This document shows, piece after piece, positions 521 through 59,663 of a DNA stretch of 64,000 nt (within the stretch, counting starts at the first letter, position 1; each line of letters opens with the position of its first letter). Below the pieces are notes generated by a model. That model was not told the origin of the DNA. It saw only the letters and a list, made by a program, of their open reading frames with translations, and ran no database searches. The stretch spans positions 62,001-126,000 of the forward strand of contig CBCOSG010000001.1 in NCBI GenBank assembly GCA_965112735.1. Direction: 5' to 3'. The DNA is from Phaeosaccion multiseriatum. Its lineage: Eukaryota > Protista > Ochrophyta, other classes. A program made the position numbers and the translations under genes.

Positions 521-886
521 TTATTTAGTACCAGTTTTTAATTTTGTATCTTTGTTGCAAAGACAGAACTGAAACTTAAATTGTACTTGATCATCAAAAG
601 AAGTTTGTAACCAATTTAGATAACGTAGTATTGGATAAAGCTTCATGTGTGAAAAATATAAACAAGCCTTGTAAGTACGGCGTTCGTAAGTATTTCGAGA
701 CTTGGAATGCACATGGGAAGAGCGTAGCAAAGTCCAAGTTTTTTTTTGATAAGGGGTATTTTCTATTCTGTAGGTATGCCGTGCTGGAATTTCTTGTAAA
801 ACTAAAGCAAGAAGTCCTTTAGAATAGGTTCTAATGTTTATTTTTACGCTCGCAAGAGAAGTTGAATGGGGTGTAGCTAATTTCAT
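521..886 (-). CDS. rps10: ribosomal protein S10
   Basis: TLLRSSHVHSKSRNTYERRTYK matches the uS10 motif TVLRSPHVxKKSREQFE. Confidence 0.85.
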   Translation of the reverse strand: MKLATPHSTSLASVKINIRTYSKGLLALVLQEIPARHTYRIENTPYQKKTWTLLRSSHVHSKSRNTYERRTYKACLYFSHMKLYPILRYLNWLQTSFDDQVQFKFQFCLCNKDTKLKTGTK

Positions 887-944
887 ATATATATTTTGGT
901 TTTTATACTAAATCCCAGAAAATCAGGAAAGGGGATGTTGTAAT

Positions 945-1015
945 CAAAGGTAGAATCTAGATTTACGACTTTTGGATCATGAGCCTAACAAGCTGACCAA
1001 GTGTTTTAGTCCACC
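945..1015 (-). pseudogene. trnM: degenerate tRNA(CAU)
   Basis: Anticodon arm TTAGG-CTCATGA-TCCAA resembles the intact copy at 31909; T-arm and acceptor stem are destroyed. Confidence 0.75.
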
Positions 1016-1046
1016 AGTATATGAAAAAACTACGTGAATTTTAGAT

Positions 1047-1409
1047 TTAAAAAACTTCACAAATCAAACTACCTCCACTGCCTAAGCTTCGCGCAGTAGA
1101 CTCACTTATAATTCCATAAGGCGTACTTAAGATAACTAAGGAGGTTTGGCTACGTCGTGTCCATCGGTGGCAAGAAGTGGGGCGAGAGGAAAAAAAGATA
1201 GAGCCGATTACACTTCTGCCTTGTACGTACTTTAGTAAAATTTTGACTCGAGAACAGGTTTCTTGAGTATAACCCCGCAAAAATCCGTATTGCCACAGTA
1301 CGTCTAGGACTCGAAGACCGGCTTTAGTGGGTACGCAAACAACGCTAGATTTTTTATTTCGATAAGATTGATCTAAAATCTGTAGCATGGGTTGAATTCC
1401 TGCTTTCAT
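1047..1409 (-). CDS. rps8: ribosomal protein S8
   Basis: VLDVLWQYGFLRGY, ILLKY, ILSTPYGI...GGSLICEVF (uS8 pattern). Confidence 0.93.
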   Translation of the reverse strand: MKAGIQPMLQILDQSYRNKKSSVVCVPTKAGLRVLDVLWQYGFLRGYTQETCSRVKILLKYVQGRSVIGSIFFSSRPTSCHRWTRRSQTSLVILSTPYGIISESTARSLGSGGSLICEVF

Positions 1410-19590: not shown

Positions 19591-19680
19591 AGGGAAAGTA
19601 AGCAAAAAGAAAAAGAATACCTCCCGAGTCAAAATAGAGAAAATTTATACGTCCTATGGGCACTAAAAAAAAATTTATTA
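19591..19680 (+). repeat. copy of the nad11 5' leader and first ~8 codons (27148-27235)
   Basis: GGGAAAGTAAGCAAAAAGA...GAATACCTCCCrAGTCAAAATAGAGAAAATTTATACnTCCTATG shared by both loci. Confidence 0.93.
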
Positions 19681-20186
19681 GACCCTTCTTTAAGAATAGA
19701 AGCTTCTTAGAAAAGGTGGACCTATTCCTTTTTGCTTATTTCACTTGTATTCTATTTACGATGGCAGTATTATCATCCCTTCTTGAAGTGGGATCCTTAC
19801 TAAACTTTTTAAAGGGAAAGAAAAGTTTTCCCTCGCCGATAATCGGGGGAGTTACCGGTCTTATCGTGCTTTGCGCTATAGGACTCTTCTTTTTTGACCA
19901 CAGGGTCAAACAAGATTCCGGGGTAACAGTAAACTTTGGAAAGTTTCAGGGATTAAGCCCCCTTTCCAAAGTAACATTTTCCCTCTTTTGGTTCACACAC
20001 TATATTTTAGTGTACTTATTTGGAGAGGTTTGCGCCTATTATGGATGCAAGCAATTTTCTCATGTCTACCACCTCATACCAATCTCGGAGATGTACCCCT
20101 ATGAACCCTATCTTGGGGCTTTGGGTATCTTGGGATTGTTGGCTGTATGCTTCTACATTGACCCTCCACGGGAGAGGAAAGAGTAA
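19656..20186 (+). CDS. orf176, hydrophobic ORFan (~4 TM) with a nad11-derived start
   Basis: Open 176-codon frame with hydrophobic segments; MGTKKKFI versus nad11 MTTKKIFI. Confidence 0.7.
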   Translation: MGTKKKFIRPFFKNRSFLEKVDLFLFAYFTCILFTMAVLSSLLEVGSLLNFLKGKKSFPSPIIGGVTGLIVLCAIGLFFFDHRVKQDSGVTVNFGKFQGLSPLSKVTFSLFWFTHYILVYLFGEVCAYYGCKQFSHVYHLIPISEMYPYEPYLGALGILGLLAVCFYIDPPRERKE

Positions 20187-21533: not shown

Positions 21534-21740
21534 GTGTGTAGGTTTTTTTCTGTCTTTTTGTCATTGTTGCATGGGTATTTTTGGATTTCAGTTCTCGTCT
21601 TTCCTTTGGTGACAACCCAGTTTTTGCTTTTGAACAAAGAAAAAAAAAGTTTTGGCGGGAAACTAAAACAAAAGTTCTGAGAAAAGTCTTTGATCTAAAA
21701 AATTAAAGAAAGTTTTGGTTGTCCGTTGATAATAAAAAAA

Positions 21741-23075
21741 ATGAATACCACAAAAAAAATCTATTCTAGAATTCCCTTGTCTGGGTGGCTAAAACGCTTT
21801 AAATATAAGACAAAACATATCGATTAGAAAGATTCTTCCCACTACAAGCACAAAGGCAGATATTTGGCTTCAGAAGGCTTGTCCACAGCCAAGAAGAAAA
21901 TTCTATTTAAGCTTTCTATATAAAATCAAAAGATGAATTAAAATGTCTTTGTCAGTTTCGTCGATTTACAGGCTAAATTTAAGGAGAAAAGACAGGAGAG
22001 CTTTTGATCAACAAACTGTTCCCATAGAAACCAAAAGTCGACTTCGATGCAAAATAGACACCGAAAGTACAAAAGCTTCAAAACTTTAATTCTTTACTAA
22101 AAAACCTAATTTTTTGATCTACACGATCCTAAAAAAAAATAAAAACTATGTTTGTTAGTCTTGCCAAAGTTTAAGTATATTGGTGTACTTCTTGATTCCT
22201 ACTGACCTATTGTATTATCACCCAGAAGCCTAATGCAAGGATAGGAAGGACTTATTTGATCAAAATGCCTCACTTATTAAGTTTTAGCATTAATCTACTC
22301 TAACTCAAGTTTTGACCCCTTATTTAAGCTTTTTACAGCCCTTAAAACCGTCACTCAAATGCGGATAAATAAAGCTTTACCAATAGACAAGCTAAAGTTC
22401 TTTTAAGTTTTCATCAAATACAGGAAAATAAACAAAGTATTTCATCAACACAGTTTAGAACTATTTGGTCTGTTCTTTTTTTGTAAGCTCAAGTCTTTTC
22501 TTAGTTAGTCAGCTTCTGGCCGAAGCTTAGCTTAATTTAACCCCTAAAGATACTTGAGAAATAATAATTTTCCCTAAATTAGTAGAATAAGATTGCCTGC
22601 AAGACTTAGACCACACCATAGAATCAAGTCAGACTTGGAGTGAAGTCTAGTTAAGAAAGAGGGGACTCTTAAGATAGCAGACTTGGTCGAAATTGAGATA
22701 AATAGAAGTGTGGAAGACCAAAGATTGAGAAAGAAAACTATGTCTTTCGTCAATTAGAAACCGATTGTTTAAAAAATCCTTTGCAGTGTTTGATTTTCAT
22801 TGAGCCTTAACCCCATTTTACGCCTAGAGACTAAATATTTTTTAAAAGGCACCGAAGAGAAGGTTAGATTGACAGTGAAACATTTAGTGGACGGAAGGTT
22901 TATTCTCTGGACCAAAGATATAAGAGAACCTTTTCTATCGGTTCCATAAAATAAAGTTTATTAGTTCTAAAAGTATAAAGCACTTTACTTCATCTCAAAT
23001 GGAGGCTATAATGTTGGTTATTAGGCAGCTGAGACTTTGGTAACTAGACTCAGCATCCCAATCATGCGCTAGTTA
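21741..23075 (+). pseudogene. possible decayed nad11 C-terminal half (nad11b)
   Basis: SILEFPCLGG*NALNIRQNISIRKILP resembles the start of Nad11b; length fits; many stops; 3' limit uncertain. Confidence 0.35.
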
Positions 23076-23577
23076 AAGTATAAAATTTCCTTGATTTGGT
23101 TATGATCTCTTAGTTAAATATGAGGAAAAATTGCTCTTTCCGTCTAATAGAAATGAGTTAACAAACTCATTGATGGACATCTTTAATCAATCTTTTCTTT
23201 TTGATTAAGTTTTTAGGGAACAGACCCGAACAAAAAAGAGGAAAAAAAGAGGTACACTTAAAAAAGCCAAAAGTCTGCTCTCGTAATTAAACCAATCCTT
23301 TGTACTGAACCAAAACTCTGTAAGTGCTCGAAAAAACCTGTTCCTTACATTAGATTGTGTTTTCTCATATGAGAGGGCTACCAAATGCGAGTCCCATCTT
23401 TAGCACGAAACCCCAACCCTGTAGGATCTGGAGTGTAATTTGCAAATGGGCCCTACATACTGGCTGGTCCGGGAACCGGGGAAATTTATTTATCCACAAG
23501 AATCTAAATCATAAAATTAAAATAAAGCTTTATAGACCACATCCCCCTTGTTTATTTCTTGGAAATAAAAAAGATCA

Positions 23578-24886
23578 AAGACTTGAGTTTGATCCTGGCT
23601 CAGGATGAAGGCTAGGAGTATGCCTAACACATGCGAGTGTTGCCTTCTCTTAGAAGAAGAAAGCGCGAACGGGTGAGTAATACTTGGAAATCTGCCCTTT
23701 CTGAAGAAAGTAAGTAGGGAGTCTTCCCCACTTTTGCCTAATTTAGACAAAAAAGAAAGGAAGAATCCTCGAAGGATTAAGGAAGTAGGAAGGATGACAG
23801 CCTTCCTATTCAAAGATCCTTAGTTGGTCTGTGAGGTCGACCAGCCACATTGGAACTGAGACAAGGTCCAAGCCCCTGTAAGGGGCCAGCAGTGAGGAAT
23901 CTTGGACAATGAGCGGAAGCTTGATCCAGCAATATTCCAAGGGGGAAGAAGGCTAAACTGGTTGTAAACCCCTCTCCCGTGGAAAGATTCAGACGCCATT
24001 CACAGGGGTAGTCCCGGCCAATTCTCGTGCCAGCAGTCGCGGTAATACGAGGGGGCAAGCCTTATCCAGAATGATTGGGCATAAAGGGTTCGTAGAGGGC
24101 ATTTTCCTAGATCGTAAGATAAATTCTACCCCCCAAGGGTATGACTTTTGACAAAACCGGGATGCTAGAGTCGAAGAGAAGATAACAGAATCACTTATTT
24201 AGGGATAAAATCCGTAGACATAAGTGGGAATACCAGAGGCGAAGGCGGTTATCTAGATTCGCACTGACCTTCAGGGACTAAAGTGTGGGGAGCAAACAGG
24301 ACTTGACCCCCTGGTAGTCCACACCCTAAAATATCAGCCTAGCTGTTTAGACTGAGAAGTTTAAGCATCTTCCCTGCTAAGGCTAAGGCTGCGCCTGAGA
24401 AGTACAGCATTCAGATCTGAAATTCAAAGGAATTGGCGGGGGCTTATACAAGTGGTGGAGCATGTGGTTTAATGCGATGCTACGCGCCAAACCTTACCAG
24501 TTCTGGAATACTTCTTTCCCTTTTCGGCCTCGGAGATAAGACCAAAGACAGGAAGTACAGGTATTGCATGGCTGTCGTCAGTCCGTGTCTTAGGATGTTA
24601 AGTTCACTCTTATAACGGACGCAACCCTCTTGTGGCAGATAAAGCTCTTACCAAAGTTTTAATTGGTGAGTCCAACTTTGTCCATACTCCACATACTGCT
24701 TAGACTACGGTTTAAGAGGAAGGCGAGGATGAAGACAAGTCCTTATGGTCCTTATGAACTGGGCTACACACGTGCTACAATGGAAAGGACAATGAGTAGG
24801 AAAGATAAAATCAGTCTTTGCCAAACTTGAACACTTTCTTTGGTTCAGACTGAGGCCTGCAACTCGGCTTCACGAAGGCGGAATCA

Positions 24887-24919
<33 letters not shown>

Positions 24920-25085
24920 CTGTACCTAGGCTCTGTACAAACCGCCCGTCACATGTTGGAAGCCGGGCTTGCTCGAAGAATGTCAATGAAATGCTTTGTC
25001 TATTCTCTTGGATTTGAAAGTAGGCTTGGTAACTGAGATGAAGTCGTAACAAGGTAGTCGTAGAGGAATCTGCGGCTGAATTCAA
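23578..25085 (+). rRNA. rns: mitochondrial SSU rRNA
   Basis: GAGTTTGATCCTGGCTCAG, GTGCCAGCAGtCGCGGTAA, AAGTCGTAACAAGGTAG; ends approximate. Confidence 0.98.
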
Positions 25086-25329
25086 AGAAATAAGGTCTTG
25101 AACCTCAGGCGGTATAGAATTTAAGAATGAAAGTTTTCTTTATAAAGGTGAAACATAAGCTTCTGGAACCTATGTCAGTCTTAAAACACAATATAGGGTT
25201 TTGGTATTTTTTAGGCATCAGCATCACTGAGATTTTGAAGCTCTTGGTGAGTATGCTTATTTTTTTTTGGTTTTGTGTACTAATGAACTTCTTTAATTTG
25301 ATAAAAAATTAAACTAATGAGCTCTCTAC

Positions 25330-26172
25330 TTGTACTTGCAGTTTTTAGTCAATTCTCCTGCAAAATCTTGGTTTAAAATTTTAAGCCCTGCTTTCATTTT
25401 GACTTTAGGAATTCAAACTCTTTTACTGCCGCTACCGTATATGTACCCAAATTCGGCCTCGTTCATTTTTAAAGCGAGTCTTTGTGTGGTTTGGGTGTTT
25501 CAATATCAAAAATGGTCGATGATACTAAAATTTGAAAATGCCAAAACTCGGTCTAAAGAGGGCCTTTATGTAGTCTCTCTTTACGCGGACAGTCTTACCC
25601 ATCCAATCTTTGGCAAACTTCAGACATATCTGTATTGGTCTTTTGTATTGGGGATTCTTCTGCCGCGGCAGTATTCAAATATGGCCTACTTTGTAGGTGT
25701 AATTTTCGTATTAATGTCCATTTACTTCTTGCCAGGATATCTGCGGGCAACGCGGCGGCTTTTTAATGAATGTTTTTTGGACCCCCGTGTACTCTATGAG
25801 AGAGGGTTCACGAAAAAGAGGTTAGTGTGGGAGCTAACTGTGGAACACTTAAAGAGGGCCGGAATTTTCATTATAGGGGGCCTACTTGTCGACGTGGGGA
25901 TCGGAAAGTACCTTTATGGCCCAGACGGGAGGTCGTCGATGCAAAACTTATTTTCTTCGACGTTTGCTAACTTCACTGCGGACACTCACGAAAGTGTCAC
26001 AAAATTCCGATTCCTCGAGAGAAGAGGAGTCCCCTCAGAGCTATTGAAGACGGCGTCCGGGAAAGTAGATGTAGGGGCAGTAAATTGGTTCCTTCAGGAC
26101 TATAATACCGTTCTTGATTATGTAGGAGAAGAGTATAGAGCCCAACTAGAGGATACAATCGAAAAACCTTAA
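25330..26172 (+). CDS. orf280, membrane ORFan; paralog of 30863-31729
   Basis: Intact 280-codon frame (TTG start); C-terminal GRSSxQNxxSSTFxNFTADTxESVTKFR...EKP shared with the paralog. Confidence 0.8.
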   Translation: MYLQFLVNSPAKSWFKILSPAFILTLGIQTLLLPLPYMYPNSASFIFKASLCVVWVFQYQKWSMILKFENAKTRSKEGLYVVSLYADSLTHPIFGKLQTYLYWSFVLGILLPRQYSNMAYFVGVIFVLMSIYFLPGYLRATRRLFNECFLDPRVLYERGFTKKRLVWELTVEHLKRAGIFIIGGLLVDVGIGKYLYGPDGRSSMQNLFSSTFANFTADTHESVTKFRFLERRGVPSELLKTASGKVDVGAVNWFLQDYNTVLDYVGEEYRAQLEDTIEKP

Positions 26173-26244
26173 TGGGTAGATTACAATACTAGAAAAGTAG
26201 AATAATCCTAAGTAAATTATCTTGTGTTCTACGCTATTAAGCTA

Positions 26245-26515
26245 TAGAATTATAAGTGAGTCTACTGCGCGAAGCTTAGGCAGTGGAGGTAGTTTGATTT
26301 GTGAAGTTTTTTAAATCTAAGATTCACGTAGTTTTTTCATATACTGGTGGACTAAAGCACTTGGCCAGCTTGTTAGGCTCATGATCTAAAAGTCGTAGGT
26401 ATAAGTTCTACCTTTGCCCGCAATATCCTGTTTCCTGACTTTCTGGGATTTAAGATGAAGACCAAAAAATATATATTAAATTAGCTACACCCCACTCCAC
26501 TTCTCTTGTGAGGGA
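26245..26515 (+). pseudogene. duplicated rps8 3' end + pseudo-trnM + rps10 5' end (inverted copy of ~850-1118)
   Basis: GAATTATAAGTGAGTCTACTGCGCGAAGCTTAGGCAGTGGAGGTAGTTTGATTTGTGAAG identical to rps8; AAATTAGCTACACCCCA is the rps10 start with the ATG lost. Confidence 0.92.
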
Positions 26516-26608
26516 AAAAATAAGGAAAAAAGAAGCAAACAGTAATTTATAGAACCTAGATTTGTTTCAGAGGAGCAAATACGGACTTCGTGATATTTAG
26601 GAAGAACC

Positions 26609-26761
26609 ATGCCACAATTTGATCAAATCACCTTTTTTACTCAAATTCTTAATTTGGGTTTGTGTTTTTTTGGATTTTATTTTTTCTTTGTTTTCTACTA
26701 CCTGCCCAGTCTTAGTGCCTCTTTAAAATTACGCAAGATTTTTAAGGATCTTCCCCGTTAA
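26609..26761 (+). CDS. atp8: ATP synthase subunit 8 (50 aa)
   Basis: MPQFDQITFFTQ...LPSLSASLKLRK; below the ORF-track cutoff. Confidence 0.95.
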   Translation: MPQFDQITFFTQILNLGLCFFGFYFFFVFYYLPSLSASLKLRKIFKDLPR

Positions 26762-26784
26762 GTATCTGATGTTCGAAGCCCAGT

Positions 26785-26858
26785 CGGGAAATGGCGCAGC
26801 TTGGTAGCGCATCTGTTTTGGGAACAGAAGGTCATGTGTTCAAATCACATTTTCCCGA
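26785..26858 (+). tRNA. trnP: tRNA-Pro(UGG)
   Basis: TT-TGG-GA. Confidence 0.94.
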
Positions 26859-26957
26859 ATACTTAGGTATTTGCCTACGAACTTCAGGAGCCTAATAGAA
26901 AACCTCAAGGTATCTCTTGCATCACATATTTTGGTAATTTTAGTGAATGCGATGGGA

Positions 26958-27028
26958 GACCGGATAGCATAAGGGCAATGCCTTGGATTGCAAATCCAAT
27001 TATGGGAATTCGACTTTCCCTCCGGTCT
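26958..27028 (+). tRNA. trnC: tRNA-Cys(GCA)
   Basis: TT-GCA-AA; acceptor GACCGGA/TCCGGTC. Confidence 0.9.
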
Positions 27029-27050
27029 AATACTTGTAAAAAAGTAGAAA

Positions 27051-27145
27051 CCAAGATCGTACTGATATTTGTATGAAATTATACCATAGGTATTTATAAC
27101 CTAATATGGAAGCCATTCGTCTGAATCAGGTAGGGGTAAAAAACC
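27051..27145 (+). pseudogene. duplicated nad9 leader and 5' fragment
   Basis: CCAAGATCGTACTGATATTTGTATGAAATT matches 33215-33309; a CAA codon has become TAA. Confidence 0.9.
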
Positions 27146-27211
27146 TTGGGAAAGTAAGCAAAAAGAGAAAGAATACCTCCCAAGTCAAAATAGAGAAAAT
27201 TTATACTTCCT

Positions 27212-28108
27212 ATGACCACTAAAAAAATATTTATCAACCATCAGCTTGTTTTTGTTGAAGAATTTTCCTCAGTATTACAAGCATGTAGTAGTTTAGGCAT
27301 AGAACTTCCTCGATTTTGTTATCATCCCTTATTAAATATCGCGGGAAATTGTCGTTCCTGTCTAGTAGAAGTTAGCCAAGGTCCAAAACCTCAGATGAGT
27401 TGTGCCTTCCCTATTTTAGGAGGCGGACGATTTTTTCTTCATAGTCCTTTGGTACGAAAAGCCCGAGAAACAGTTTTAGAGTTCAATCTAGTAAACCACC
27501 CTCTAGATTGCCCTATTTGTGACCAAGGAGGGGAATGCGATCTCCAAAATCAAAGCTTTCACTTCGGCAGTGACAAAACACGGTACGCTGAAGTAAAGCG
27601 TACGGTCAAAGAGACTTTTCTAGGTCTAGGTATAAAAAGTTTGATGACTCGTTGCATACATTGCACTCGCTGTGTGCGGTATTCTAAGGAATGGTTGGGA
27701 GACAGTAATTTGACTGCCAATGGCAGAGGCTCTCACATGATAGTCGAAGCTTACTCCTCAACTCCCTTAACCACTTTAGCCTCAGGCAACGTAATAGATC
27801 TATGCCCCGTAGGGGCAGGTCTAAAAAAGGTGGTTAAAATTCTTGGGGAGAGTTGGGATTTTGTCGTCCGCTTGTGGCGAGACCTTCCTTTGGTATTGGC
27901 TTATCTTTCACTTATAATCTTATACACCTGCATTGGACTCCTCGGAGTCCGCCATATGTATGTGTATCTTGGCTGGGTCTATGCTACTTTTTTAGTAGTG
28001 TGGGGACTGTCACTTTACAAACTATGGCGGTGGGAGCCGTATAAAATAATAGGACCATATTTGGTCCTTGTTTTGTACGTCACTTTTAAGATTTGGGTTT
28101 CCTCTTAG
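27212..28108 (+). CDS. nad11: NADH dehydrogenase subunit 11 N-terminal Fe-S half with a ~96-aa hydrophobic C-terminal extension
   Basis: PRFCYH, AGNCRSCLVE, NHPLDCPICDQGGECDLQ, RCIHCTRCVR, DLCPVGA. Confidence 0.95.
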   Translation: MTTKKIFINHQLVFVEEFSSVLQACSSLGIELPRFCYHPLLNIAGNCRSCLVEVSQGPKPQMSCAFPILGGGRFFLHSPLVRKARETVLEFNLVNHPLDCPICDQGGECDLQNQSFHFGSDKTRYAEVKRTVKETFLGLGIKSLMTRCIHCTRCVRYSKEWLGDSNLTANGRGSHMIVEAYSSTPLTTLASGNVIDLCPVGAGLKKVVKILGESWDFVVRLWRDLPLVLAYLSLIILYTCIGLLGVRHMYVYLGWVYATFLVVWGLSLYKLWRWEPYKIIGPYLVLVLYVTFKIWVSS

Positions 28109-28159
28109 GAGCTGACAAGATTTTTCTTCCATTTGTGAAGTTTGTGACAAGCTTCAAGC

Positions 28160-29854
28160 AAAATAAAGAAAATCTTCACAAAGGGCATGGAGGGAATGCC
28201 TAGGGGCCCAGCCTCTGTAGACGTAGACAACAACGAAAGCTCGGAGGAAGGTCTTCGACCTGTGCACTTCGACCTTCTACCTTGGAAAACCATTCCGTTT
28301 GAGGAAAAACAGGCCAGTAAAGCCTGCAAAGAAGAGGGCAGACAAACTGAAACATCTAAGTAATCTGCTTAAGAGAAATCAACCGAGATACCGTAAGTAG
28401 CGGTGAGCGAAAACGGTGTAGGCTCTCTCCTAGACGACCTTGAAAGATCCAAATTAAAAAACGACTCCAGCTCAATAAAACATTGGATGGAGAAGAAAAC
28501 CATAGAAGGTACAAGTCCCGTAGGGGAAGAAAAGGAGAGGATTCAAGTACTTTTCTGGCGATAGACAAGGAATATTGGGGAGCCATCCTCAAAGCCTAAA
28601 TAGACTGGGCCACCCATAGTGAACAAGTATCGTGAGAGAAAGGTGAAACAGAGATTTCTGCTGTGAAATGTCCTGAAACTCCCTGCCTTTTAGGTGTTGA
28701 AGCTTTGTGGAAGTGACAGCCTACCTTTTGTATAATGGGTCAGTGAGTAAAAGATTAGGGGCAAGCTTAAGTTTAGGAAGGCAAAGGTCAATCGAGGAGT
28801 AAAACTTCGTGGAGTCCCAATTTTTTTTACCCGAAACCGACTGAGCTAAGATTGAACAGGTTGAAAAAGACAAGGCAACTTTCTTTGGAGGACCGAACCC
28901 GTGTATGTGGCAAAATACTGGGATGATTTGATCTTAGGGGTGAAAGGCCAATCAAAGTCGGAGATAGCTGGTTTTCTGCGAAATCTATTGAAGTAGAGCG
29001 TCTTAATGGGAAATCCGGGGTAGAGCACTGTCGTAGGAAAGGGGAGGCAAAATCTTACTGACTTATGGCAAACTGCGAATACAGGATACGTCTTCAATCA
29101 AGGCAGACAGACCATGGGTGCGAAGGTCCTTGGTCAAAAGGGAAACAGCCCAGATTGATGGTTAAGGTCCCCAAAGGAAAGGAAGTGAAGAAGGAGGTGA
29201 CGAGCTAAAGACAGCCAGGAGGTAGGCTTGGTAGCAGTCATCCTTTAAAGAATGCGTAACAGCTCACTGGTCGAAGTTTTTTGCGCCCACAATGTTTGGG
29301 ACTAATCTTTCCTACCGAAGCCTCAAACCCTACAGGGTGGTAGCAGAACCTTCCGTAGGTCGAGGAAGATGAGGGGCAACCTTCATTGGAGATATCGGAA
29401 TCGAGAATACTGACATGAGTAGCAACAAACCAGGAGGATCCTGGTGGCCTTAAATTCAAGGGTTTCCACGACAGATTTCTTCTTCGTGGGGGCTTGAGCT
29501 AATCTCAAGCCATAAAGACGGTCCCTAAGACTGCTGACGAAAGCCAGGGTTGATGGGAGATCTTAGACAGGACGAAGCTGGCAGAGGAAGTAGAGGAGTA
29601 TAGCTGGTCTCCTCTGCTTTAGCTCAGCTTCCAGGAAATACTTCTAGGAGCGGCACCGTATCGTAAACCGACACAGGTGAATGGGTGGAGTACACTCAGG
29701 CCTTTTACACTCAGAGCCTTTTGAGAACCGTGTTGAAGGAACTCGGCAAAATGACTCCGTGGCTTCGGTAGAAGGAGGAAGCCTTTGTAGGCTTGGCACT
29801 AAAGTGGGAGCGGCGACTGTTTAGTAAAAACACAGGACTCTGCGAAGTTGTAAA

Positions 29855-29892
<38 letters not shown>

Positions 29893-29978
29893 CGGAAGAC
29901 CCGAAAGTGGAAGCTTTTAGGGAGAATGCCCAGTAAACGGCGGCTGTAACTCTGACGGTCCTAAGGTAGCAAAACTGA

Positions 29979-30009
<31 letters not shown>

Positions 30010-30085
30010 TGTAACGACTGCTCCGCTGTCTCCAACACGGACTCAGTGAAATTCCCATGGTCGTGAAGAGGCGACCTCGCTGCAG

Positions 30086-30119
<34 letters not shown>

Positions 30120-30424
30120 TTTGAGCTGGGAAGCATGACATAGGTTGCGTAGTAGTAGGTGGGAGGTTATGCCGCAGATGAAAGACCACCCTCCTTCAGT
30201 CTAGCTTTCTTCACCTGACTTGGGACAGGCTCAGACGGGTAGTTTGGCTGGGACGGCAGCCTCCTAAAGAGTAACGGGGGTACGCAAAGGTACACCCTTC
30301 CATGAAGGAAGAAAAGGCGGAATGGCTTGATGTGTGCCTGACTGTAAGACTCACAAGTCGAACAGAGACGAAAGTCGGCCATACAGATCCGGTGGATGTG
30401 CATATGGGCACTTCACCGCTCATA

Positions 30425-30460
<36 letters not shown>

Positions 30461-30862
30461 TCTCGAGAGCTCCTATCGACGGAAGGGTTTGGCACCTCGA
30501 TGTCGACTCATCACATCCTGGAGGAGAAAAAGCTTCCAAGGGTTGGGCTGTTCGCCCATGAAAGTGGTACGTGAGTTGGGTTTAGAACGTCGTGAGACAG
30601 TTTGGTCCCTATCTACTGTGGACAACAATCTAAGGGAAGAAATTCTAGTACGAGAGGACCGAATTTCGGGGATCCATGGTGTACCGGTTGTGTGAGCACA
30701 TGCAGTGTCGGGTAGCTACATCTCTAGAAGAGAATGGCTGAAAGCATCTAAGCCAGAAACTTGTCCTCAAGCATTGTCTAGGCCTCGTTTTAGACGAAAA
30801 CGTGAATAGGAGGGTAGTGAAAGTCGTGTAAGCGGTGTAGCTGATCCTTACTAATTAGGCTT
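28160..30862 (+). rRNA. rnl: mitochondrial LSU rRNA; no introns seen
   Basis: ACTGAAACATCTAAGTA, GACGGAAAGACCCC, GGCACCTCGATGTCG, AGTACGAGAGGAC (sarcin-ricin loop); ends approximate. Confidence 0.98.
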
Positions 30863-31729
30863 ATGATGTTTAAATACATGCTGCGTCGTATGTGGAAACG
30901 AATAACAGATTTGGATACAGAGGTTTGGTTTGTAATACTGTTTGTAGCCTACTTTTTAACCTTTGTCATTTCCTCCCTTGGACTGTTTGAGGGTAGGTTT
31001 GATATCGTGTGTTCACTAGTGCAATTCAGCGTCCATCTGGGGTGGATTTTTTACTACCATAAAGAGGTAATTTTACCCAAGTTTAGAAAGGATAAAACCC
31101 GGTGTAGAGAGGGCAGTTATGTCGCATCTCTTTACCAGGATAGTCTGGGACACGAAGGTTTGGCAAAAGTACAAACTCTCTTGTATTCGTCATTTATCCT
31201 CGGAATCGGTCTACCACCAAAATACTCTATTTTGTTTTATCTCATAGGTTTACTCTCCTTATTGGCCTGTCTCTATTTACTGCCGGCGTATGTGCGATCA
31301 ACCACACGACTGTTTCAGGAGTGTTTTTTGAATCCTGGAGTACTCCACGCTAAAGGGTTTACAAAAAAAAGAATAGTGTGGGAAGTGGCTGTAGAACACG
31401 GCAAAAGAATTCAAATAATTGTAGCGGGGGGCTAGTGGCAGATGTGTGGGTCGGAAAGTTCTTTTACGGTCTAGATGGAAGGTCGTCGCTGCAAAATTTC
31501 TATTCTTCGACGTTCGATAACTTCACTGCGGACACTCAAGAGAGTGTCACGAAATTCCGGGCCCCGGGCCCTCGAAAGCAGGAGAGTCCCCTCAGACCTG
31601 ATGAAGACGGCGTCGGGGAAACTGGATATAGGAGCAATAGATTGGCTTCTTCAAGAGTATAACGCGGCTCTTGATCATTACGGAGAACTATATAAGGCTC
31701 AACTTGAAGATCGAGTCGAAAAACCTTAA
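30863..31729 (+). CDS. ~orf287, membrane ORFan and paralog of orf280; frameshifted as assembled (G6 run at ~31426; 7-nt duplication at ~31561)
   Basis: Collinear with orf280: KTRcrEGsYVaSLYqDSL, FqECFLnPgVL, GFTKKRiVWE, ...LEDrVEKP. Confidence 0.75.
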
Positions 31730-31806
31730 TAGTGTAGAGATAGGTAAGTTGCTAAAGGGGTATAATACCCCTAAGTAAATTATTTTGTCTTCTATGCTAT
31801 TAAGCT

Positions 31807-31880
31807 ATGGAATTATAAGTGAGTCTACTGCGCGAAGCTTAGGCAGTGGAGGTAGTTTGATTGGTAAAGTTTTTTAGACC
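31807..31880 (+). pseudogene. second duplicated rps8 3' fragment
   Basis: TATGGAATTATAAGTGAGTCTACTGCGCGAAGCTTAGGCAGTGGAGGTAGTTTGATT identical to the rps8 3' end. Confidence 0.92.
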
Positions 31881-31908
31881 TAGGACTCACATAGTCTTTT
31901 CATACCAT

Positions 31909-31982
31909 GGTGGAGTAGAGCAGTTGGCCAGCTTGTTAGGCTCATGATCTAAAAGTCGTAGGTTCGAATCCTACCTCCGCCC
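31909..31982 (+). tRNA. trnM: tRNA-Met(CAU), initiator-like, intact copy
   Basis: Full cloverleaf GGTGGAG/CTCCGCC with GTAGG-TTCGAAT-CCTAC. Confidence 0.88.
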
Positions 31983-32217
31983 GTATGCATGAACGAATAA
32001 ATCCCCAGTCTAACGAGGAAATCCTCGGTTTAAAGTCTTACATCTGCTACATTAGTCCCAGGTCCGGATCTGGGCCATCTACCTATATTCCCATTATAGC
32101 CAATATTGGCCATATAGGCCGATACTAGCTAAAATAAAGAGGATAGATAAATGGGTTTCTCTTGCAAGCTTCCGCCGAAGATACCTCTTTCGAGGAAGGG
32201 GTTAGAAGGCGGAAAAG

Positions 32218-33184: not shown

Positions 33185-33236
33185 AAACTGAATCGGCTTT
33201 TGTGTATTAGAGGGCCAAGATCGTACTGATATTTGT

Positions 33237-33764
33237 ATGAAATTGTACCATAGGTATTTACAACCTAATATGGAAATTATTCCTCTGAGCCAGGTGCGGG
33301 TAAAAAACCAGGAGGTGTGCGCTTATCTGCCTTTTCCTCCTCAGTGTTTTTCAACTTTGGTTTATCTAAAGTATCATACAAACACTGGGTATAAAATTTT
33401 ATCTTGTATCTCCGGAGTGGATTACCCTTGCCGACAAAGTCGGTTGGAAGTGGTCTACGAAGTATTAAGTATCAAGTATAACCAACGCCTCCGTTTGCGA
33501 ACTCTGTTTCAACCTAAAACCTTTAGATTTTTAGGTCTAGATTCAGTAACTAATATTTATATGGGCGCCAATTGGTGGGAAAGAGAAGTTTGGGATATGT
33601 TTGGTATCCTTTTTGAAAATCACCCCAGTTTACGGCGAATCTTAACGGATTACGGCTTTCAAGGCCATCCTTTACGAAAAGATTTCCCATTGACAGGCTA
33701 CGAAGAACTTAGGTACGACGATAGTGTGAAGAGAGTGGTAGGTAATCTTATCCAAAATTTATAG
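33237..33764 (+). CDS. nad9: NADH dehydrogenase subunit 9
   Basis: GVDYP, WWEREVWDMFG, RRILTDYGFQGHPLRKDFPLTGY. Confidence 0.98.
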   Translation: MKLYHRYLQPNMEIIPLSQVRVKNQEVCAYLPFPPQCFSTLVYLKYHTNTGYKILSCISGVDYPCRQSRLEVVYEVLSIKYNQRLRLRTLFQPKTFRFLGLDSVTNIYMGANWWEREVWDMFGILFENHPSLRRILTDYGFQGHPLRKDFPLTGYEELRYDDSVKRVVGNLIQNL

Positions 33765-34935: not shown

Positions 34936-34970
34936 TAGCTCTTTTAGTAGTACCGTCTTTACTAATCCTT
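34936..34970. other. 35-nt non-palindromic apex; candidate hairpin telomere loop
   Basis: TAGCTCTTTTAGTAGTACCGTCTTTACTAATCCTT between GATAGGGGGTC and GACCCCCTATC; inner stem TTAGTA/TACTAA. Confidence 0.7.
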
Positions 34971-38177: not shown

Positions 38178-39037
38178 TTAAGGTTTTTCGACTCGATCTT
38201 CAAGTTGAGCCTTATATAGTTCTCCGTAATGATCAAGAGCCGCGTTATACTCTTGAAGAAGCCAATCTATTGCTCCTATATCCAGTTTCCCCGACGCCGT
38301 CTTCATCAGGTCTGAGGGGACTCTCCTGCTTTCGAGGGCCCGGAATTTCGTGACACTCTCTTGAGTGTCCGCAGTGAAGTTATCGAACGTCGAAGAATAG
38401 AAATTTTGCAGCGACGACCTTCCATCTAGACCGTAAAAGAACTTTCCGACCCACACATCTGCCACTAGCCCCCCGCTACAATTATTTGAATTCTTTTGCC
38501 GTGTTCTACAGCCACTTCCCACACTATTCTTTTTTTTGTAAACCCTTTAGCGTGGAGTACTCCAGGATTCAAAAAACACTCCTGAAACAGTCGTGTGGTT
38601 GATCGCACATACGCCGGCAGTAAATAGAGACAGGCCAATAAGGAGAGTAAACCTATGAGATAAAACAAAATAGAGTATTTTGGTGGTAGACCGATTCCGA
38701 GGATAAATGACGAATACAAGAGAGTTTGTACTTTTGCCAAACCTTCGTGTCCCAGACTATCCTGGTAAAGAGATGCGACATAACTGCCCTCTCTACACCG
38801 GGTTTTATCCTTTCTAAACTTGGGTAAAATTACCTCTTTATGGTAGTAAAAAATCCACCCCAGATGGACGCTGAATTGCACTAGTGAACACACGATATCA
38901 AACCTACCCTCAAACAGTCCAAGGGAGGAAATGACAAAGGTTAAAAAGTAGGCTACAAACAGTATTACAAACCAAACCTCTGTATCCAAATCTGTTATTC
39001 GTTTCCACATACGACGCAGCATGTATTTAAACATCAT
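38178..39037 (-). CDS. ~orf287, mirror copy (only the G6 frameshift)
   Basis: The 190-aa and 114-aa ORFs join at IVAGG/LVADV. Confidence 0.75.
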
Positions 39038-43711: not shown

Positions 43712-44553
43712 TTAAGGTTTTTCGATTGTATCCTCTAGTTGGGCTCTATACTCTTCTCCTACATAATCAAGAACGGTATTATAGTCCTGAAGGAACCAAT
43801 TTACTGCCCCTACATCTACTTTCCCGGACGCCGTCTTCAATAGCTCTGAGGGGACTCCTCTTCTCTCGAGGAATCGGAATTTTGTGACACTTTCGTGAGT
43901 GTCCGCAGTGAAGTTAGCAAACGTCGAAGAAAATAAGTTTTGCATCGACGACCTCCCGTCTGGGCCATAAAGGTACTTTCCGATCCCCACGTCGACAAGT
44001 AGGCCCCCTATAATGAAAATTCCGGCCCTCTTTAAGTGTTCCACAGTTAGCTCCCACACTAACCTCTTTTTCGTGAACCCTCTCTCATAGAGTACACGGG
44101 GGTCCAAAAAACATTCATTAAAAGCCGCCGCGTTGCCCGCAGATATCCTGGCAAGAAGTAAATGGACATTAATACGAAAATTACACCTACAAAGTAGGCC
44201 ATATTTGAATACTGCCGCGGCAGAAGAATCCCCAATACAAAAGACCAATACAGATATGTCTGAAGTTTGCCAAAGATTGGATGGGTAAGACTGTCCGCGT
44301 AAAGAGAGACTACATAAAGGCCCTCTTTAGACCGAGTTTTGGCATTTTCAAATTTTAGTATCATCGACCATTTTTGATATTGAAACACCCAAACCACACA
44401 AAGACTCGCTTTAAAAATGAACGAGGCCGAATTTGGGTACATATACGGTAGCGGCAGTAAAAGAGTTTGAATTCCTAAAGTCAAAATGAAAGCAGGGCTT
44501 AAAATTTTAAACCAAGATTTTGCAGGAGAATTGACTAAAAACTGCAAGTACAA
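43712..44553 (-). CDS. orf280, mirror copy (T-run frameshift)
   Basis: The 164-aa and 178-aa pieces reproduce orf280. Confidence 0.75.
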
Positions 44554-58470: not shown

Positions 58471-58881
58471 TTAAACAATTTTGGTGGCAACCCCAAGCTT
58501 AGTAGCTCCTCCTTGAAGAGCATACCGGCTTAAATTTTCAGAAATTCCCACAATTTCAAGGATAAGTTTTCCGGGAGACACCATCATTTCATAATGATCT
58601 ATTTTTCCTTTACCCTTACCCATACGAACTTCACAAGGTTTTTGGCTTCGCCCACGATCGGCGAAACCATGAATCACAATTTGCCCTTTACGTCTCAAGC
58701 GCCGATTTATATTTTGTCTGCAAGCTTCCATCTGTCTGGTACTAATTGTTCCCGTGCTTAAAGATTGTAGTGCAAATCTTCCTTTTTGCCCTCGAAAGAT
58801 AGAAAGAGAAGGAAGTTTAGGCTTGTGGGGTTTAAGAAATTTGGTAGAATACATAGAACTTTTATACAAAGACAAAGTCAA
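58471..58881 (-). CDS. rpl16: rpl16, mirror copy
   Basis: Identical protein. Confidence 0.95.
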   Translation of the reverse strand: MTLSLYKSSMYSTKFLKPHKPKLPSLSIFRGQKGRFALQSLSTGTISTRQMEACRQNINRRLRRKGQIVIHGFADRGRSQKPCEVRMGKGKGKIDHYEMMVSPGKLILEIVGISENLSRYALQGGATKLGVATKIV

Positions 58882-58902
58882 AATAGTAAAAATTAATTCT
58901 TT

Positions 58903-59259
58903 ATGCTTTACCTATGGGGAATCTACGCCGAACCTTCTCTCAATTTTCGCCAGGCTCTCACTCAGGTTTACGGTTTGGGAAAATTTAGAGCGGACTTAAT
59001 AGGTAAATATTTAGGTATGAAGCCTACTACCTTTTGCACTTTTCTTAGTCCGCTACATCAAACCAAACTTCAACATATGATGAAGATTGTATTTTGGAAA
59101 ACTAATAGTTTTTTACGTCAGCAAAGATTTGAGAAACTTACAAGTTTAAAAGAAATTCGTTGCTATAGAGGAATACGTCACGGGCAGTCTCTGCCAACAC
59201 GAGGTCAAAGAACTCACGCCAACGCTAGAACAGCAAAAAGTCATAAATCGAAGACTTGA
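58903..59259 (+). CDS. rps13: rps13, mirror copy
   Basis: Identical protein. Confidence 0.95.
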   Translation: MLYLWGIYAEPSLNFRQALTQVYGLGKFRADLIGKYLGMKPTTFCTFLSPLHQTKLQHMMKIVFWKTNSFLRQQRFEKLTSLKEIRCYRGIRHGQSLPTRGQRTHANARTAKSHKSKT

Positions 59260-59663
59260 GCCTTTTGATGCAAACTCCTACAAAAATCTTTACTGAAGCA
59301 GGTATCCTTCACCTCAGCTTAGGTCGTCGTAATACTCTATTCACCTTTTATAACAAATCAAAATCTCTTGTTTGTGCCACCTCCAATGGATGTGTAGGCT
59401 TTACCAAAGCTACCCGAAGGACTTCATATGCCAGTGAAATACATACCAAACATTTTTTACAAATCTTACAACAAAGAAAGGTTTGTAAACTACGTCTTCA
59501 TGTAGAGGGTTTTAATAAAAGTCGTAAGAAAGTGTTACAACTTTTGCGAAAAGGAAAAAAGACTAAAACCTTTGAGGTGGGCTGGGAAAAAACTAATTAT
59601 CCTCATAATGGTTGCCGAACTAAAAAGCAAATTCGCCGTAAGAGGCGTCGACGTGATCTTTAG
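59256..59663 (+). CDS. rps11: rps11, mirror copy
   Basis: Identical protein. Confidence 0.91.
   Translation: MSLLMQTPTKIFTEAGILHLSLGRRNTLFTFYNKSKSLVCATSNGCVGFTKATRRTSYASEIHTKHFLQILQQRKVCKLRLHVEGFNKSRKKVLQLLRKGKKTKTFEVGWEKTNYPHNGCRTKKQIRRKRRRRDL

Follow-up and report, generated by a model that had tools for sequence, protein, structure and literature searches.

A putative orphan membrane-protein gene and its probably broken paralog behind the two rRNA genes of a Phaeosaccion mitochondrial genome

The gene treated here, orf280 of the alga Phaeosaccion multiseriatum, finds its closest described parallels in the OrfR-OrfW proteins of eustigmatophyte algae. These are encoded in the mitochondrial genome, are more than 200 residues long, and combine three to five N-terminal membrane helices with a prolonged C-terminal, presumably soluble domain (PMC13060386; published version PMC13449250). 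The study that describes them, which dates from 2026, covers more than 50 eustigmatophyte organellar genomes (PMC13060386, section 10). OrfR-OrfW are fast-evolving proteins for which HHpred and Foldseek return no homolog. A genome often holds two to four copies, which are sometimes fragments or frameshift pseudogenes. Their orthogroups are mostly without detectable mutual similarity, only orfU and orfV being linked (PMC13060386). Another orphan of the same algae, in Microchloropsis, lies in duplicated cox1-orfO blocks, OrfO having fewer than 100 residues and two helices (PMC13060386, section 10). The locus described below is contained in a stretch of 64,000 nucleotides (nt) of P. multiseriatum DNA (contig CBCOSG010000001.1, positions 62,001 to 126,000), referred to as the window, whose positions are used throughout. 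It comprises orf280, an open reading frame (ORF) behind the small-subunit ribosomal RNA (rRNA) gene rns, and a second, collinear copy behind the large-subunit gene rnl, which we call copy B.

Mitochondrial gene sets are held to be almost closed; ochrophyte algae keep yielding constrained membrane-protein genes of obscure role. An earlier, sequence-only reading of this stretch had seen in the two ORFs a mobile or selfish cassette of possibly foreign origin, present behind each rRNA gene, and had likened it to the ORFs of cytoplasmic male sterility (CMS) in plants. CMS ORFs are hydrophobic, lie near recombination-derived junctions and are probably co-transcribed with neighbouring genes. The account that we favour, with moderate confidence, is instead that of a genuine orphan membrane-protein gene, internally duplicated, the second copy of which is probably broken.

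orf280 and its collinear paralog

The two loci are organised around the following features.

23577-25091, plus strand: rns (small-subunit rRNA), directly upstream of orf280 (Rfam RF00177, 961.6 bits)
25330-26172, plus strand: orf280 (copy A), from the ORF list; five hydrophobic segments, then an acidic tail at the C-terminus
43712-44553, minus strand: mirror copy of orf280, in the opposite arm of the inverted repeat; its frame is shifted by a homopolymer difference (T5 to T4)
28169-30872, plus strand: rnl (large-subunit rRNA), the last 10 nt of which overlap the ATG ATG start of copy B (Rfam RF02541, 1744.7 bits)

The orf280 frame is open from 25321, with a TTG at 25330 or 25336 as candidate start, so placed that the ORF begins about 239 nt past the Rfam end of rns (25091). 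Copy B spans 30863-31729 on the plus strand and is collinear with orf280. In BLASTP its N-terminal part aligns to orf280 residues 14-184 with 48% identity over 171 amino acids (aa; 1e-44), and its C-terminal part shows 68% identity over 98 aa (2e-49). The sequence-only reading had already pointed to an open frame behind rns, to a collinear paralog starting at the 3' end of rnl, and to three motifs common to both products; all of this is confirmed, and the motifs (GFTKKRxVWE, DGRSSxQNxxSSTFxNFTADTxESVTKFRxLExRxVPSxLxKTASGKxDxGA and LEDxxEKP) are the exact consensus of the alignment. Between rns and orf280 the spacer is filled by a 61-codon hydrophobic ORF (25127-25312), possibly a spurious one, to which nothing corresponds at copy B.

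Comparison of orf280 with copy B over codons 65-280 gives a ratio of nonsynonymous to synonymous substitution rates (dN/dS, omega) of 0.20, with a 95% bootstrap interval of 0.11-0.29. The two off-frames, which contain stops, give omega values of 1.35 and 1.74, and the differences are distributed over the three codon positions as 58:40:101. The purifying selection that had been proposed earlier, with dN/dS between the paralogs as its check, is thus borne out, and the pattern is the one expected of a protein-coding family under such selection. Downstream of the point at which the frame of copy B is broken, omega is still 0.28 (0.14-0.52), from which we conclude that this part, too, stayed under coding constraint through most of the period after the duplication.

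Hydropathy analysis finds five hydrophobic peaks in each copy, at corresponding positions within residues 13-195, followed by a helical, acidic C-terminal tail of about 85 residues. Both copies carry a net charge of +2 at the N-terminus, of +3 and +3 in the loops at residues 60-97 and 141-175, and of -4 in the tail. By the positive-inside rule the N-terminus would lie in the matrix and the tail in the intermembrane space. We read the orf280 product as a putative accessory protein of the inner membrane, with a tail that may bind a partner.

The window is part of a 224-kb contig, C17, in an assembly of 67 Mb and 22 contigs. Its rRNA genes are rns and rnl of bacterial type and a permuted mitochondrial 5S; together with 34 transfer RNA (tRNA) genes and the customary set of genes for respiratory and ribosomal proteins, they show it to be a mitochondrial genome. 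On C17 orf280 recurs every ~56 kb on each strand; the genome has thus been assembled about four times over. Each unit contains two 15.5-kb inverted repeats, head to head around position 34953 and with the outer boundary placed at ~19425. Since orf280 and copy B both lie within the inverted repeat, each is present twice per genome, and eight assembled copies of each can be compared. orf280 is intact in seven of the eight; the eighth differs by T5-to-T4, a frameshift that is assembly noise. The last ~12 kb of C17, from ~211800 to its end at 224089, is far noisier, with many multi-base insertions, and is unfit for judging gene integrity.

Several neighbouring features were observed in passing. 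The 1.7 kb or so that immediately precede the permuted 5S rRNA and rns (21620-23350) contain no ORF of at least 60 aa, have a GC content of 0.32-0.35 and may be a control region. The mitochondrial nad11 of this alga encodes the N-terminal iron-sulphur (Fe-S) part only, as is reported for brown algae with their relatives, eustigmatophytes showing the reverse condition (PMC4824035); the alga is a stramenopile, probably near the lineage of brown and yellow-green algae. The Fe-S part continues into a hydrophobic tail of ~90 aa (27827-28108) that resembles nothing else in the genome, including orf280 and orf176, another orphan ORF.

The frame break in copy B

Copy B had previously been taken for one continuous ORF (~orf287). 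It consists of three frame segments, with a 1-nt deficit and a 7-nt duplication between them.

30863-31435, plus strand: N-terminal part of copy B (ORF list), 190 aa, four hydrophobic segments, ending in TAG
31426-31431, plus strand: G6 run at which copy B is one base short of the orf280 frame, the 0 frame reading G GGG GGC TAG (alignment)
31432-31556, plus strand: middle part of copy B in the -1 frame, with the fifth hydrophobic segment and the DGRSS...TKFR motif
31557-31563, plus strand: 7-nt tandem duplication CCGGGCC, which brings the original frame back (comparison of the two arms)
31565-31729, plus strand: C-terminal part of copy B, 54 aa, ending in LEDRVEKP and a stop
38178-39037, minus strand: mirror copy of copy B, without the 7-nt duplication and with the G-run break only

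The two lesions differ in standing. The CCGGGCC duplication occurs in one of the eight assembled copies, this one only, and we take it to be assembly noise or a rare variant. The G run, on the other hand, has lengths of 6, 6, 6, 6, 5, 5, 6 and 6 across the eight, and in none of them is it G7.

If the true run were G7, the break would be an assembly artefact, and both copies would be intact and functional, two diverged paralogs, one for each rRNA gene. Several observations are in keeping with this. The arms of the palindrome differ by 34 indels, nearly all in homopolymers, and by no substitution; in seven clean copies of a 4.3-kb stretch each minority variant is a 1-nt homopolymer deletion; and the G run itself is called as G6 or G5 in different copies. 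The low omega past the break fits as well, and a single added G gives the frame ...AGGLVADVWVGK..., matching orf280. An undercalled G7 is therefore possible, given such deletion-biased homopolymer noise in a long-read assembly. However, no copy reads G7, and other G6 and C6 runs, within cox1, cox3, rps3 and rps2, are in frame and the same in both arms. Moreover, all core genes examined in this arm are intact, cox2 in four of four copies, so consistent frameshift errors are not the rule. Because G7 is never read while the runs in core genes are in frame and stable, we regard the break as probably real and a fully intact copy B as unlikely.

Copy B is thus most likely a recent pseudogene, and to speak of two cassettes, as had been done, overstates the case, as the second is probably broken. 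Less probably, copy B may still be expressed through a -1 slip on the heptamer G GGG GGC just ahead of TAG. Such a slip would restore the frame exactly, as it would appear to do for any shortened G run, and folding of the region downstream of the heptamer revealed no stimulatory hairpin (z -1.0 and +1.8).

A further difference between the arms lies in rnl, where 14 nt at 29707-29722, an imperfect local duplication of CTCAGxGCCTTTT, are present in this arm only; this insertion is probably an assembly artefact.

The shared 3' flank and the origin of the two copies

Both ORFs are followed by the same flanking sequence, which also has a counterpart elsewhere in the window.

26207-26245, plus strand: 39-nt 3' tract after orf280 (pattern search)
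31770-31808, plus strand: 39-nt 3' tract after copy B (pattern search)
26243-26314, plus strand: copy of the last 72 nt of rps8 after orf280, identical to the real rps8 end at 1047-1118, minus strand (three-way alignment; inverted repeat)
31806-31877, plus strand: copy of the rps8 3' end after copy B, with 2 differences from the real rps8 end (repeat search, alignment)
26346-26419, plus strand: degenerate trnM(cat) relic after orf280 (28.0 bits in the tRNA model, where the cut-off is 29; not called by ARAGORN)
31909-31982, plus strand: intact trnM(cat) after copy B (ARAGORN; Rfam 59.6 bits)
26475-26523, plus strand: degenerated copy of the rps10 start, 49 nt long, its ATG changed to ATT (alignment with 838-886, minus strand)
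838-1118, minus strand: source-like single-copy locus, with the real rps8 3' end, a decayed trnM-like spacer and the rps10 start (Pfam S8 and S10; alignment)

In a pattern search the tract, CCTAAGTAAATTAT...GCTATTAAGCTAT, was found only behind the two ORFs and their mirror copies, with four matches against none expected. Its presence after both ORFs had been recognised in the sequence-only reading, together with a junction to a copy of the rps8 end plus trnM. The junction is indeed the same in both units and leads into the last 72 nt of rps8; the trnM gene, however, is intact after copy B only.

Real rps8 (1047-1409, minus strand) is followed by the decayed trnM-like spacer, in which a tRNA-model search after the gene detected nothing tRNA-like, and then by rps10. 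In the three-way alignment the relic of trnM behind orf280 reads as a mosaic of the versions at copy B and at rps8, and the homology of the orf280 flank to the rps8 locus extends into the start of rps10. The flank was therefore built from the genome's own rps8-trnM-rps10 region, and its sharing by the two units indicates internal recombination rather than an incoming element. No 5' flank is common to the two units, and RNA folding of the shared tract and the rps8-end copies gave no significant structure (z -0.2 to -1.9).

Identity between the units, taken per 90 nt, rises from ~0.5 (0.49) at the 5' end through 0.63-0.68 in the middle to 0.73-0.83 in the C-terminal third; it is highest, at 0.88, in the rps8/trnM repeat. 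dS is saturated over the first two-thirds and is 0.53-0.65 in the last 90 codons. It follows from this fall that the strong conservation of the C-terminal half is in part a matter of younger coalescence. We propose that orf280 underwent an old duplication, through recombination within the genome and not through transposition, in which the duplicated unit would have included the junction to a copy of the rps8-end/trnM/rps10-start region. The resulting dispersed repeat of ~220-280 nt, now present three times per single-copy equivalent, could then have seeded gene conversion that partly homogenised the 3' halves, as the gradients of identity and dS suggest.

Other repeats occur around genes of this genome. 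A 95-nt repeat (27051-27145 and 33215-33309, 89%) joins the upstream region of nad11 to the 5' end of nad9 and is another gene-end junction in a recombination-prone genome, and orf176 and the nad11 start have a common 87-nt leader (19592-19678 and 27148-27234, 93%).

The competing idea of a selfish, CMS-like or foreign cassette, plasmid-derived or toxin-like, that spread into the strongest transcription units takes its strength from the position of both copies behind rRNA genes, from the hydrophobic product, from the lack of relatives, from the several chimeric gene-end junctions in the genome, and from codon usage. As had been noted earlier, codons ending in G are enriched: their fraction (G3) is 0.257, compared with 0.169 in 23 core genes (p = 1.5e-7), and the GC content of third positions (GC3) is 0.442 as against 0.343 (p = 1e-6). 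These atypical codon ends fit weak codon adaptation as well as foreign origin, and they do not single out the latter because orf176 shows them too (GC3 0.455). Overall GC content at the orf280 loci is ordinary for the neighbouring DNA. Searches with Pfam and NCBIfam found no polymerase, endonuclease, transposase or toxin domain in the orf280 units, and the units have no terminal inverted repeats or target duplications in common, nor any shared repeat or shared end beyond the internal flank, which is the genome's own sequence. There are two loci only, both old, as the saturated dS in the 5' two-thirds attests, and no copy was found outside C17 in the rest of the assembly. The rps8 fragment sits in the 3' flank, and the coding regions of orf280 and copy B contain no piece of a standard mitochondrial gene, which removes the basis for the analogy with plant CMS ORFs. 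Sustained purifying selection, finally, is as compatible with a function for the host as with a selfish one. We therefore abandon the mobile or selfish cassette of foreign origin proposed before, which we now consider very unlikely, and retain the internal duplication of a resident gene.

orf176 (19656-20186, plus strand) itself belongs to a second pair of orphan hydrophobic paralogs. Its partner, orf190 (C17 ~58805-59377; L017:6806-7378, minus strand), is 58% identical to it over 173 aa, and neither has a Pfam or NCBIfam match.

Relatives and comparison with described systems

No relative of orf280 was detected in Pfam (E <= 1 and E <= 10), NCBIfam, a word-index protein search, a profile search of 1.84 billion protein representatives (0 matches), two metagenome scans (one with the protein as query, one with a back-translated NFTADTxESVTKFR pattern), the PDB sequences, or the ESM Atlas, queried both with the complete protein and with its tail. 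Within the whole genome unit, tblastn and BLASTP of both copies retrieved only each other, and orf176/orf190, the nad11 tail and orf61 showed no similarity to orf280. orf280 appears to be a genuine gene of the mitochondrial genome without detectable relatives, and the earlier failure to recognise its family is upheld, no match to tatC or another standard gene having emerged.

That orf280 is an extremely diverged standard gene is the least probable of the alternatives: tatC is the obvious candidate, since the TatC profile (PF00902) has no match on C17, orf280 is about TatC-sized with several membrane segments, and eustigmatophyte orfX and orfY proved to be diverged rps4 and rps1 (PMC13060386), but orf280 gives no TatC profile match even at E <= 10, hhalign returns a probability of 0.4% against the TatC encoded on contig C19 (probably the plastid copy), TatC has six membrane helices without an 85-residue tail where orf280 has five segments and a long one, and a duplicated, partly decayed state would be unusual in a core gene. 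TatC profile matches occur only at C19:60001-60615 (intact) and C18:56869-57482 (with stops), and both look plastid-derived.

Several points weigh against the account of a genuine, duplicated orphan gene. orf280 is known here from its sequence alone; its first in-frame ATG does not come before codon 38, which leaves the start codon uncertain, and an AlphaFold2 model from a three-row alignment, although all-helical, has a pLDDT of 48.5, too poor to support a fold or topology. The selection estimate rests on two sequences without an outgroup and is not assignable to either copy, and in such data gene conversion is indistinguishable from stronger constraint on the C-terminal half. Both copies lie directly behind the two rRNA genes, which would be unlikely under random placement and is not explained by our account; the position may do no more than include the ORFs in polycistronic transcripts of high abundance. 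As evidence of orphan status the empty homology searches count for little, since the best match to the Cox3 of this alga among 5.8 billion proteins is only 70% identical and a word search with the genome's own Rps3 also finds nothing. Named Cox3 matches, at 60-66%, include brown algae, Schizocladia and the pelagophyte Aureoumbra, and an exact look-up of this Cox3 returned nothing. Two contigs reached through Cox3 matches, L022 and L023, come from no close relative, given the full-length nad11 of the first and the atp4 of the second.

The practical weight of the locus is modest until expression and relatives come to light. It nevertheless shows how a short gene-end repeat, here the rps8 end, trnM and rps10 start, could bring about duplication, and in part homogenise the copies, in the mitochondrial genome of a protist.

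Among the described systems, plant CMS loci share with orf280 a hydrophobic mitochondrial ORF beside recombination-derived junctions. CMS ORFs, however, are young and contain pieces of standard genes in their coding sequence, whereas orf280 contains none, is old and appears to be under purifying selection. The duplicated cox1-orfO blocks of Microchloropsis are comparable in that an orphan membrane ORF has been duplicated with neighbouring sequence and the paralogs have diverged; they differ in that orf280 was duplicated with its own 3' flank only, and with no core gene.

The likeness to OrfR-OrfW goes further. orf280 is mitochondrially encoded, on C17, lies outside the standard gene set and belongs to no family recognisable by Pfam, NCBIfam or PDB match. 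Its product exceeds 200 aa and, as judged from hydropathy, has N-terminal hydrophobic segments followed by a long tail. There are two paralogs per repeat arm, with copy B frame-broken at the G run. In contrast, the host is not a eustigmatophyte, its nad11 being the N-terminal Fe-S part and atp1 not having been seen, and two traits, the placement after rns and rnl and the rps8/trnM flank, are peculiar to the present genome. No similarity between orf280 and OrfR-OrfW was seen in the search of 1.84 billion representatives, OrfR-OrfW themselves being compared by description only. We would therefore group orf280 with OrfR-OrfW by analogy of architecture and behaviour, and not as a member of any orthogroup.

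A bolder and distinctly speculative proposal, to which we give little credence at present, is that accessory inner-membrane proteins with N-terminal helices and an intermembrane-space tail form one class, ancient and evolving very fast, of which orf280 and its paralog would be the first members outside eustigmatophytes. If this were true, the ancestor shared by several classes of ochrophyte algae would already have carried such genes in its mitochondrial DNA. The occurrence of an OrfR-OrfW-like architecture and copy-number behaviour outside eustigmatophytes suggests, in any case, that the phenomenon is not confined to a single class of algae, and makes orf280 a second system in which to ask what such proteins do.

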